Source of the DNA: Guillardia theta CCMP2712
Taxonomy: Eukaryota > Protista > Cryptophyta
Assembly (NCBI RefSeq): GCF_000315625.1
Contig: NW_005434667.1
Coordinates: 673,061-737,060 of the forward strand
Direction of reading: 5' to 3'
Length of the DNA stretch: 64,000 bases
Shown: piece by piece, positions 22,712 through 33,299 of the stretch
Layout: each line of letters opens with the position of its first letter
How positions within the stretch are numbered: position 1 is the stretch's first letter
Notes under the pieces: generated by a model
Seen by the model: only the letters and a program-made list of their open reading frames with translations
Database searches by the model: none
Told to the model about the DNA's origin: nothing
Translations under genes and position numbers: made by a program

Positions 22712-23956
22712 ATGAGCTCAAGAGCAAAGGACAGCAAGGCTGGAAGAAAACCGGATAAAAGAAAGTCGGACAACCCTGGAGCAGGGACCAAGAAAAGAGT
22801 CTTGTCGGCAGATATGGTAAGGACGATCTATGCAGAAAGGAGCACGAAAGCAGGTTACAAATCTTTGGAGAGCGTTGTAGTTGCGAACAGGTACGGAATC
22901 AGCTCCAAGACCGTTCGAGACATTTGGGACCATCGAACTTGGATCGACGTGACAAAACCGCTGTGGAATTGTGATGAGCTCAACCAGATCGTAGCAAGCA
23001 AGCAGACCGAGTCGAAAGACGTGGAGATGAAGAAGGAGAGAGGTCAGAGTGAAGGAAACGGAAGCAGGCAGATGGAGGTCGGTGAGATGATTTCTGGGGG
23101 TGACCCGGGGAGCTCTGCGATGGATTTCCAGGATGACAAGTCGAACAGCATCTCTCCTTTCAACATTTCGGAGGATAGCGACGTCAACAAGTACTTGCGC
23201 GACAGCAGCGAGGAGAAAACAGTCCAGAGCTTCTTGAACCTGGAGTCCGAATCCAACACTGGGAGCTCTGCTTCGATGTACAGCAGCGAGACTAAGGACG
23301 CCAAGGGTAGCAGCGATCGGTACCCTCTGAGGGGCGCAAGGCGTAGAAGCTCGCGAGGGGAGGAGGCACAGAGCACGAGCCCTCCTGAAGGTGACTCGCA
23401 CACGTCTTCGTCAGAGAACCACACAAGGACGAGCCGGTCTACCTCGGGGAGTCGCAGCGATGCTGCTGCGCAGGACAGCACTAGCTGCAAAGCGCAAAGC
23501 GAGGGGAAGCGATCTAGGAGGAAGGGCGAGAAGGGAAGGGAGAGGGAGCACGAGGCCAGGGCAGTGAGGGACGGGTCATCGCCGGAATCTCCTTCGGTCG
23601 CTGGAGGATCGAGTGATGGAGATGCGAGTTCAAACAGTCAGAGCGCAGATTCAATGACAGAGACCAATGTGATGATAGCGTCACAAACCGCTCCTTCATC
23701 TAGCACAGGTGGAGGGCGAAGTGGAGAGGGTGGCGTTGGCGGCGTCACCAGAGGAGGAGCAGGAGGAGGAGGATCAGCTGCAACCGCTGCAGCCACAGGA
23801 GGATCTAGCTCAGGGGCAGAGAACAAGATGAGCGCTTCCAAGTCAGGATCTGTGGGGAAGCGTTCGGACTCAGATGACAGCGCAGGGTGGATCAAGAGCC
23901 TGGATGCCGATGACATCCAGAGCTATATGCTCAACGAGACTAGCAGCGACGATTGA
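22712..23956 (+). CDS. HTH-domain protein 1 (N-terminal YGISSKTVRDIW HTH; Ser/Gly-rich disordered tail)
   Basis: Intronless 414-aa ORF; the N-terminal domain is paralogous to the ORF at 32383. Confidence 0.75.
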   Translation: MSSRAKDSKAGRKPDKRKSDNPGAGTKKRVLSADMVRTIYAERSTKAGYKSLESVVVANRYGISSKTVRDIWDHRTWIDVTKPLWNCDELNQIVASKQTESKDVEMKKERGQSEGNGSRQMEVGEMISGGDPGSSAMDFQDDKSNSISPFNISEDSDVNKYLRDSSEEKTVQSFLNLESESNTGSSASMYSSETKDAKGSSDRYPLRGARRRSSRGEEAQSTSPPEGDSHTSSSENHTRTSRSTSGSRSDAAAQDSTSCKAQSEGKRSRRKGEKGREREHEARAVRDGSSPESPSVAGGSSDGDASSNSQSADSMTETNVMIASQTAPSSSTGGGRSGEGGVGGVTRGGAGGGGSAATAAATGGSSSGAENKMSASKSGSVGKRSDSDDSAGWIKSLDADDIQSYMLNETSSDD

Positions 23957-30862: not shown

Positions 30863-31643
30863 GGTCTCTTGCCGCGCCCTTGTGTGTACCTTTGTTCATC
30901 AGATCCCTAGTCATCTAAGGATTCATACTAATTCTTTGTGCTCGCTACAGCTCGATTCTCCTTCCTTAAAACCATGTCCCACCTCCTCAATCTTCCTGTC
31001 TCGTCCTTGTGCTGGCGTATCTTGATCTTGCCGTTTCCATTGTCGTTCTGGACAGGAGGAAAGGAGGCAGGCGGGGTGAGGACGGAGAGGAGTTGTGCAG
31101 AAATCGATCAGGGCGAGACAGGGTGGATCTAGCAGAAAGGGGGGTGGGTGTGACAGGGTGATACCTAAGGACCGGTACGGCCGGTACATCGTTCCAAATC
31201 GTCCATGAGAGGAGGCCCGATAAGTCTACAAGGGAGGGGTACTGAGCTGTCGCGACTTCAAAAGGTGGGGGTGGGGGTGAACTGCAAGAGGTTTGAGGAG
31301 GGGGGTTCATCTGCACAAAGAATTTTGATATGCGCTAGCGGCTACACCGTGATCGGACATGTACCACGGGCCCGGGCCGGGGCGCGGCGTGGGCCGGTGC
31401 AGTGCCGGCCGTACTAGCGGCTCAGCCGCTCGCCGAGCCGACTCGAGTCCGCCCGGGCGATCCGAACTTTGCCAGCTGGGTAAACAAGATCATCCGAGGG
31501 TCAAGTTAAGTTAAAAATCATGCAGTACGAGGACAATCCGAGTCACTGGGAGAGTCCAGGAGGCTTGAACCTGACACTGTCACACTTACTGGCCCAAACG
31601 GCGAGAAGAGAAAAGACAGCGAGAACCAAAACTCGGCGCCATG

Positions 31644-31852
31644 CCAGCGATCATCGGATATGACACTACGGGACCCCCCCGGTAGTCTACTTATTAGCTA
31701 AACGACACAAAACATAAAATTTCAAAATTCTAAATTTTCCGTCGAAATTATGGATCATTGAAGACCCACACGCCAATATTTCCTTGTGTCTGACTCGTAC
31801 TTCATCCTTTCTATGAAGAACAGGTTGAAGTATAACCAGACCCATGTGTGAT
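31644..31852 (-). ncRNA. Candidate Fanzor omegaRNA (scaffold 31852-31664 plus flanking guide)
   Basis: Stems seen: GTCTG..TACTTCA.CCT.TTCT/AGAA.AGG.TGAAGTA..CAGAC; GGGTC/GATCC; CGAC..TAGAATTT/AAATTTTA..GTCG; ACTAC.GGG/CCC.GTAGT. Located between the Fanzor stop and the element end, where omegaRNAs are encoded. Confidence 0.65.
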
Positions 31853-32262
31853 TCAAGGCCGTTTCAGAAAATCTGGTCGTGCTGGTAGAGACATGTAGCA
31901 CAATAGAATATTCATAGCAGCATTGACATCACGAGACTTGATACGGTTTTGAACACAATTGGTGGATCTGCACCATTTCAAACCCCGCACCACTGACACT
32001 TCGTCAGCAAGTATACCATTCTTGTTGATTTGTTTGCGTCTCAAATCATACAATTCTTGATGACATTGATTGCAACATTTTGTCGTTCTGTATTCATCAA
32101 CTGCCGTCACCTCGAAGAAGTTCTGACATCGCCTTTTGATCCATTTTACAGGCACTGACTTCTCTCCACGCCCAGTACAACCGAATGATGCATCACCGTA
32201 TGCAATTATTGGATTTTGATCTGTCCCATTACCTTTCATCTTCTTGAAGAAAGTGAAAATTG
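31664..32262 (-). mobile_element. 5'-truncated Fanzor-bearing CACTA/EnSpm-like element (right end only)
   Basis: The terminus reads CACTACGGGACCCCCCCGGTAGTC at 31664 on +. Inside lie a structured 3' region and a Fanzor ORF fragment, broken at a poly-C tract. No partner TIR found by eye. Confidence 0.7.
31853..32262 (-). pseudogene. Fanzor1/TnpB-like RuvC nuclease, C-terminal fragment
   Basis: IIAYGDASF, VDEYRTTKCCNQC (catalytic E and Zn finger), LKWCRSTNC, SRDVNAAMNIL (RuvC-III D); RuvC-I and REC/WED are missing. Confidence 0.9.
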
Positions 32263-32289
32263 CCCCCCCCCCCCCCCCCCCCCCCCCCC
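32263..32289. repeat. Poly-C/poly-G homopolymer (~27 nt)
   Basis: Homopolymer at the Fanzor truncation point. Confidence 0.95.
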
Positions 32290-32382
32290 TCCTCTCGTTC
32301 CCCCTCGTTCCTCCTGTGAATAACCATAGCAAACCCTCTCGCAACATCATACAGCAGCTCTTGGGTGAGTCCAGCCAAAACT

Positions 32383-33114
32383 ATGTCCGAAAACAAGCAA
32401 ATGCTTCCTTCCAATGCGCAGAACATTGAAAATGTTCGTAAGAAAACTTTGACTTCTGAGCAAGCGGTTGAGATCTTCGCTCAGAGGAACGTTGAGTCCG
32501 GTTTCATTTCTGTGGAGAGCAATTTTTTGTCGAAGAAGTATGGCGTAAGCGCTAAGACTGTGCGCGACATCTGGAACCGAAAGTCATGGACCGAAGTGAC
32601 AAGGCCGTTGTGGACGGCGAAAGGTAAAGAGCTTGAAGCGTCGAAGGTGCTCCAGCAGCTTGTGAACGAGAATGGAAAGGGCGCAGGCAGATGTGAAAGT
32701 GACAGCCAATCTGAGGAGTGGAATATCTTGTCTACAACATCAGCAGCTGTCGAGAGAAGTCAGTCACGCGAGCGCAGTGTGCTGTTCATAGAGAATCGAG
32801 CAAACACTGACGTGTTGTGCAAGCCTGCACGGGTAGCCGATACGCAACGGATGGTAACGGAGGAGCTGCTGTCGAAGAAGCGAGGGGCGGCTGAGGCGAC
32901 GAGCGATACACAGCAGGTAGAGAAGAGGCAGAAAGCGATGGAACACTTCTCAAAAGGTCCTGCTGTAAAGATGACGAATAGCTGTGGTGTGGCATCAGAG
33001 ATCTCAGCGCTCCTGCAGCTGCTGGTGCAACAGCAGAAGAAGATCATGGACCAGCAGCAGCAGATCTGGTACATTTTCGAGGGGCATGAGCGACGAACTT
33101 TGAAGATGCGTTGA
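32383..33114 (+). CDS. HTH-domain protein 2 (YGVSAKTVRDIW HTH; Gln-rich coiled C-terminus)
   Basis: Intronless ORF; KKTLTSEQAVEIFAQR..LSKKYGVSAKTVRDIWNRKSWTEVTRPLW. Confidence 0.8.
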   Translation: MSENKQMLPSNAQNIENVRKKTLTSEQAVEIFAQRNVESGFISVESNFLSKKYGVSAKTVRDIWNRKSWTEVTRPLWTAKGKELEASKVLQQLVNENGKGAGRCESDSQSEEWNILSTTSAAVERSQSRERSVLFIENRANTDVLCKPARVADTQRMVTEELLSKKRGAAEATSDTQQVEKRQKAMEHFSKGPAVKMTNSCGVASEISALLQLLVQQQKKIMDQQQQIWYIFEGHERRTLKMR

Positions 33115-33299
33115 ATCTCTCGTTGAGCTTCAGAACGCGCCTTCGGTGAGGCTGTTAGGAGGGATAAACGAGGGTGACTTTCGAATTGAAAGCTCTGTCT
33201 GGGTTCTTGACTTCGTGAAGCTATCTCATGAAGCACATGTCAACGGATGATCTTCAGTATTGGAAGAACCAAAACAAATGAGAAAGAAGAGCAGCTGAA

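Follow-up and report, generated by a model that had tools for sequence, protein, structure and literature searches.

Positions 31691 to 32262 of the window (the whole 64-kb stretch of DNA analyzed here) carry on their minus strand what we regard, with a probability of roughly 0.85, as a recent 5′-truncated insertion, or remnant, of an active multicopy Fanzor1 element, the terminal region of which most likely encodes the omegaRNA scaffold of the family. The locus itself is a transposon relic, nothing out of the ordinary for a genome whose Fanzor1 family is active. Partial and ORF-less Fanzor loci that supply omegaRNA have already been described in Spizellomyces (Saito et al. 2023), and the window locus is a further partial Fanzor1 copy. 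What it points to is a Fanzor1 family that is young, seems to be active, and includes an intact nuclease of 642 amino acids under purifying selection. The element's right terminus is now sharply placed, and the structured 162-nt region adjoining it is a candidate for omegaRNA and TAM characterization. Coordinates of the individual features are given in Table 1.

Table 1. Features of the truncated Fanzor1 copy and its immediate surroundings (window positions)
Feature	Position	Strand	Content or basis
5′-truncated copy of a multicopy Fanzor1 element	31691-32262	minus	~570 nt of the 3′ end; match to L007
ORF remnant	31853-32260	minus	Residues 508-642 of a 642-aa Fanzor1 protein; RuvC-II region/Glu (VDEY), C4 zinc finger, RuvC-III RD
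Poly-G (poly-C on plus), truncation point	32263-32289	minus	27 nt, preceded by G/A-rich unique DNA; direct reading
Low-divergence block	31813-32008	minus	Last ~52 codons and start of 3′ UTR; L001, X9 rec18, dS
Conserved 3′ untranslated/terminal region, candidate omegaRNA scaffold and/or transposon end	31691-31852	minus	162 nt; predicted fold and copies
Hairpin A	31788-31841	minus	22 bp; predicted fold
Terminal three-way domain	31692-31778	minus	Closing stem 31772-31778/31692-31698; predicted fold
Hairpin B	31749-31770	minus	Inside the terminal domain; predicted fold
Hairpin C	31703-31744	minus	Inside the terminal domain; predicted fold
Locus-specific hairpin-forming flank with CACTA	31662-31690	minus	CACTA at 31664-31668 on plus; in no other copy

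The protein encoded by the ORF remnant contains the stretches ...IIAYGDASFGCTGRGEKSVPVKWIKRRCQNFFEVTAVDEYRTTKCCNQCHQ... and ...GLKWCRSTNCVQNRIKSRDVNAAMNILL... and ends in RP before the stop, and the motifs IAYGDASF, VDEYRTT, CCNQC...WCRSTNC, and SRDVNAAMNI within it are those of a Fanzor C terminus. Direct searches with this fragment gave a sub-cutoff match to Pfam PF07282 (Cas12f1-like TNB; E = 1e-4), a value of 0.98 in the ESM Atlas to Cas12f1-like TNB clusters of eukaryotes and Nucleocytoviricota, and weak matches to Parasitella Fanzor 1 in the PDB. A protein search from the same fragment returned 1,304 proteins at E < 1e-3, many of them 560 to 670 amino acids long, and the fragment aligns to the C-terminal ~150 residues of these longer relatives. 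One of the 1,304, P0005 from Hanusia phi (EukProt), matches SpuFz1 at 1e-5. While an initial word search yielded three short relatives, from whose contigs two DNA copies at 90 to 93% were obtained (L001 and L002, both frameshifted), a second one, in which the C terminus of P0005 served as the query, recovered P0153, an intact protein of 642 amino acids encoded on contig L007. Cluster mates of P0153 provided four more loci (L008 to L011). The window fragment is identical to P0153 at 134 of 135 residues (508 to 642), which, together with the C-terminal motifs, bears out the preliminary description of the locus as a truncated Fanzor ORF.

To place the family among known nucleases, we built a profile from P0153 and 13 full-length relatives (profile A4, 14 sequences). 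P0153 as a single query gave no PDB match at E < 1; the profile matched the solved Fanzor1 structures of PpFz1 (PDB code 9cf0; 8.2e-24) and SpuFz1 (PDB code 8gkh; 2.2e-22), and in its alignment the RuvC-I aspartate, the glutamate, the four cysteines, and the RD pair are invariant or nearly so. Because of these matches and the near-invariance of the catalytic and zinc finger residues, we assign the family to Fanzor1. It has in common with PpFz1 and SpuFz1 the RuvC residues D/E/D and a zinc finger of the C4 type, whereas the window copy comprises only the last 135 residues; the relatives themselves are ~30 to 40% identical to one another. In the window fragment, VDEYRTT, CCNQC...WCRSTNC, and SRDVNAAMNI coincide with the invariant or near-invariant profile columns E563, T566, C570, C573, C604, C609, R617, and D618, and the glutamate before [TS][TS], the C4 zinc finger, and the RuvC-III RD are all found there. 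The RuvC-I aspartate that opens the signature D-x(125-275)-[TS][TS]-x-x-C4-x(5-50)-RD, which is D401 (AIDPGR) in P0153, is missing from the window copy, which begins at residue 508, as is the REC/WED part. Nor did a tblastn search of the entire 64-kb window, in which eight relatives of full length or more were the queries, find an N-terminal Fanzor remnant, in agreement with the earlier remark that no left end is visible. Since the N-terminal 507 codons, and with them the RuvC-I aspartate, have been lost, the window copy cannot encode a nuclease. As read from its sequence, the locus is a fragment of a Fanzor1 family member and not a functional member. Weak Fanzor matches at 22796 to 22918 were set aside as chance; they lie opposite a second HTH paralogue.

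Members with an intact ORF are represented elsewhere. Three public copies (L007, L008, and L011) have uninterrupted ORFs of 642 codons, and L007 and L011 differ at 5.6% of their DNA with a dN/dS of 0.30. From this comparison the family looks young, and its protein appears to be under purifying selection. Upstream of the intact Fanzor1 gene, positions 706 to 1085 of L007 contain three ~42-nt units and CCCGCCTTCC/CCCTCC runs, which also occur in L008 and L011; the metagenome contigs of the family break at these repeats, so that the 5′ end of the element is hidden. Fanzors have spread through giant viruses, and one full-length relative, P0008 (36% identical; positions 2502 to 7778 of L006), adjoins YqaJ and DUF5764 genes, a neighborhood that we take for a large-DNA-virus context.

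The right end of the element was located by alignment of the 3′ ends. The window copy, L007, L008, L010, and L002 share sequence up to ...GTTTAGCTAATAA, which puts the terminus at 31691; the flanks that follow GTTTAGCTAATAA are unrelated, with G as the first base in the window, A in L007, T in L008, T in L010, and G in L002. The diverged L001 ends three bases short of the common terminus, and L009 is rearranged. Loose ends occur before 31691, 31692, and 31693 in all four of the sequencing runs compared. Because both the copies and the loose ends stop at 31691, the CACTA and the fourth hairpin are part of a flank specific to this locus. The preliminary description was thus right in seeing a truncated nuclease remnant with an intact 3′ end, as the copies end at the same terminus, and the paralogous copies with this end on which it had staked its reading are present in the copy alignment. 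It was mistaken in extending the element to the CACTA, since the repeat ends 23 to 27 nt earlier, at ...GCTAATAA, and the CACTA stands in unshared flank. With the CACTA assigned to the flank, a guide starting UCAUAUCC..., as had been proposed, falls together with the idea of an EnSpm terminus; from a terminus at 31691, the first guide position would be 31690 (GUAGACUACCGGGGGGG...). For an omegaRNA that extended past the terminus, this guide would run GUAGACUACCGGGGGGGUCC... (i.e., GUAGACUACC...), and the flank that would encode it is predicted to fold into a 10-bp hairpin of its own.

The terminal region is identical in L007 and L008 and 92 to 96% identical in L001 and L002. For positions 31660 to 31860, the minus strand has a predicted MFE of −61.8 kcal/mol with a z score of −4.04, compared with a z score of −2.38 for the plus strand. 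The closing stem of the terminal three-way domain ends at the terminus of the element. A region of ~190 nt with at least four stem-loops had been noted before: the strong minus-strand fold stands, with three hairpins and the closing stem (31692 to 31841) inside the element, while the fourth stem-loop is flank. We examined compensatory changes with RNAalifold. In these small sets of similar sequences, which have low power, three diverged sequences gave no compensatory change, 10 broken pairs, and 4 tolerated one-sided changes, and five sequences gave a single apparent double change, located in the rearranged and poorly aligned L009. Substitutions in the three sequences were distributed proportionally over paired and unpaired columns, and pairs were broken about as often as by chance. 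The stem covariation for which the preliminary description had hoped is therefore absent from the few, closely similar copies compared.

The 3′ region appears to be particular to this family. A covariance model (R1) found it solely within the family itself and had no hit 3′ of the remote relatives on L003, L005, and L006; the 3′ context of L005 and L006 was not usable. The only Rfam match at E ≤ 1 was a weak one to SNORD61, on the other strand, and scans of viral contigs with exact patterns of the conserved 3′ end were negative; in metagenome contigs such patterns yielded a single match, L004, which was rejected as a chance 21-mer. In a subfamily that is ~94% identical, a 13-nt insertion (AGGCGGTAGCCTA) lies in the loop of hairpin B (L010, ~1930 to 1945; L009, ~2065 to 2090). 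In L009 this insertion is accompanied by loss of the 3′ arm of hairpin B and of most of hairpin C, and the terminal domain is therefore not kept in every copy.

Characterized systems suggest what such a region could do. The SpuFz1 omegaRNA consists of the 3′ inverted repeat and a 14- to 15-nt guide from the flank, and the GtFz1 omegaRNA overlaps the end of the ORF (PMC10432273). By analogy with characterized Fanzor1 and TnpB systems, the terminal region of the element most likely encodes the omegaRNA scaffold of the family; this scaffold may start inside the 3′ end of the ORF, where synonymous divergence drops, and the flank, from 31690 onward, would provide the guide. The likeness to the Spu-1 Fanzor1 elements (PMC10432273) includes this expectation, namely, an omegaRNA that spans the right end and takes its guide from the flank. 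By eye, however, the 3′ sequence of the window family bears no relation to the scaffolds of SpuFz1 and GtFz1. We infer that the region corresponds to an omegaRNA and that the window copy could be transcribed, and it is plausible that the window locus would supply omegaRNA in trans.

The 3′ end of the ORF also stands out in how little it has diverged. L001 differs from the window at 1 position in the 196 nt from 31813 to 32008, at 28 in the 243 nt upstream, and at 8 in the 120 nt downstream. The RNA contig X9 rec18 has no differences over 31851 to 32008, compared with 6 substitutions and 4 indels over 31692 to 31850, and in L002 the trend is similar but weaker. The intact ORFs of L007 and L011, compared with each other, have a dS of 0.04 in codons 590 to 642 and of 0.145 in codons 1 to 500. 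Low divergence in dead paralogues hints that RNA, not protein, is conserved at the 3′ end of the ORF, and the block fits an RNA or cis element overlapping that end, as in ISDra2 TnpB and GtFz1 (PMC10432273); gene conversion would also fit. It is improbable that truncated and frameshifted copies are kept, or at any rate used, as stand-alone guide-RNA genes, with an omegaRNA that starts ~150 nt inside the ORF. Were this so, it would account both for the near-invariant block in paralogues that are otherwise decaying and for the lower synonymous divergence; each relic would supply intact Fanzor1 with a guide taken from its own flank, and the genome would thereby possess a set of trans-acting guides.

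RNA data bear on transcription of the element. X9 and X10 are true RNA runs, as their contigs show the spliced introns of neighboring genes; these contigs are strandless. All X9 and X10 contigs over 31692 to 32251 (including those over 31735 to 32251) have paralogue-type differences, and one of them agrees with L001 in its differences as well as in its flank. Neither the RNA contigs nor the available raw reads, which stem from polyadenylated RNA (a type of library that would miss a small minus-strand RNA), included any that was assignable to the window copy on the minus strand. Over 31691 to 31734, raw X21 reads accumulate on the plus strand, entering from heterogeneous flanks; 37 plus-strand reads end at 31734 and then carry a run of 13 A. 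At 31713, T is present in 66 of 112 RNA reads (59%), compared with roughly 10% of DNA depth. The simplest reading is that the runs of A are poly(A) tails, which would mark 3′ ends of plus-sense RNA, antisense with respect to the nuclease gene and derived mostly from other copies, and that the element terminus is a poly(A) site for antisense transcripts from neighboring DNA, mainly at one or two copies. Extra depth over the terminal 52 nt was considered as a sign of a TIR and dropped, because the contig breaks are explained by variants at 31713 and 31734.

These data also weigh on the possibility, which we consider unlikely, that the window copy is itself a stand-alone guide locus (a "ghost") whose minus-strand RNA is bound in trans by an intact Fanzor1 and directs cleavage at a match to GUAGACUACCGG.... 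The last 561 nt of the window copy are identical to the intact-ORF copy L007, so that any omegaRNA gene in them is undamaged, but identity to a master copy reflects youth rather than selection. Intact, selected nuclease genes of the family exist, and contig depth suggests many copies in the genome. Ghost omegaRNA scaffolds work with SpuFz1 (PMC10432273), and the divergent expressed gene ~100 nt upstream (RNA contigs at 32444 to 33196) could lend promoter activity. Against the idea stand the loss of the element's own upstream region, the lack of any assignable minus-strand RNA contig or read, with the contigs over 31735 to 32251 being paralogue-like, and the predicted hairpin into which the would-be guide folds.

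The label "ghost," which the preliminary description had used, does not suit the locus in its published sense. In S. punctatus, 42 loci have full-length (19) or partial Fz genes and another 134 are ORF-less ghost elements (Saito et al. 2023, PMC10432273), and a ghost omegaRNA-like scaffold functions with SpuFz1. Whereas the Spu-1 ghosts keep both inverted repeats and have no ORF, the window locus retains a quarter of the ORF (135 codons) and has no left end. It fits the "partial Fz gene" class of that study better.

Positions 32254 to 31691 of the window correspond to 2626 to 3189 of L007 at 99.8%, with one mismatch, which adjoins the break. In the 13 nt up to the poly-G, 8 of 13 bases match L007 and the five mismatches are clustered, strict identity beginning at 32251 to 32254; since this partial match reaches the poly-G, the break is at the poly-G edge, with the mismatch cluster beside it. 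A cut at a poly-G of ~27 nt had been described before, and we counted exactly that number. In the DNA run X4, contigs over 31692 to 32251 are identical to the window at a depth of ~900 to 1140, compared with ~63 in the flanking single-copy DNA. One of the X4 contigs (depth 892) extends 271 nt beyond 32251 with sequence unlike the window, and most copies are therefore longer than the window copy. Taking contig depth as a rough proxy, this suggests ~15 to 20 near-identical copies, most of them longer than the one in the window.

It is very unlikely that the truncation is an assembly artifact, in which a collapsed repeat was joined to unique DNA through the poly-G and the real locus is full-length or empty. 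The contigs of the DNA run do break at both sides of the element, the comparison of reads and contigs excludes the poly-G stretch (32253 to 32302) and so does not independently confirm the junction, the 13 nt beside the poly-G contain a cluster of five mismatches, and no run was listed for the junction at 31635 to 31712 (3 words sampled). However, unique G/A-rich sequence runs into the poly-G, one single-copy contig reaches the poly-G edge, and on the other side the 3′ flank (31631 to 31690) is unique to this locus and is abutted exactly by the canonical terminus. For the truncated copy that we favor, possible origins would be a deletion or a one-ended, rolling-circle-like transposition of the kind seen in the Fanzor1 Helitron2 elements of Chlamydomonas (PMC3627910).

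As to the class of transposon, a CACTA/EnSpm element ending at 31664 has virtually no chance of being correct, because the copy comparison refutes it: the CACTA pentamer and the adjoining hairpin had invited this identification, but past 31691 the window locus has nothing in common with any of the six other copies, and the loose ends of four runs lie at 31691 to 31693. Fanzor1 is known from several stramenopiles and from Mariner- and Helitron-borne families, which include 5′-truncated copies with intact 3′ ends, and a Tc1/mariner-borne Fanzor1 is found in Pythium (Bao and Jurka 2013, PMC3627910). In the Chlamydomonas Helitron2 elements CRe-1, -2, and -3, which carry Fanzor1, 5′ truncation is frequent and the 3′ termini are intact (PMC3627910), as in the window copy. 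CTAA followed by T is present in all copies of the window family, with hairpin C ending a few nucleotides before it. This is compatible with a Helitron end (CTRR and then T), and no inverted repeat of the 3′ terminus can be seen. The family nevertheless differs from the Chlamydomonas Helitron2 elements in that the shared sequence is three bases longer and in most copies reads ...CTAATAA (the 5′ end was not located). A Tc1/mariner element would have terminal inverted repeats and a TA target-site duplication; TA follows ...GCTAA in 8 of 9 flanks, yet TAA is common to most copies. In L007, the 1.1 kb that precede the gene hold no inverted copy of the 3′ terminus, and inverted-repeat searches in L003 and L007 gave no TIR.

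Two neighbors of the element merit a brief description. On the plus strand, positions 32365 to 33114 hold an ORF that is expressed, occurs in single copy, contains an KYGVSAKTVRDIWNRKSW motif, and matches nothing in Pfam. It begins ~100 nt from the poly-G and is divergent from the Fanzor remnant; a stretch at 22790 to 22966 (plus strand), ~9.6 kb away, is paralogous to it (tblastx 4e-18). On the other side of the element, positions 31594 to 31630 are one copy, the only one in the window, of a 37-nt repeat (CCAAACGGCGAGAAGAGAAAAGACAGCGAGAACCAAA on the plus strand) that is unrelated to the element. This repeat reaches a depth of 22761 in X4, compared with ~63 for single-copy DNA, is abundant in the RNA runs too, and in several runs shows loose ends on either side.
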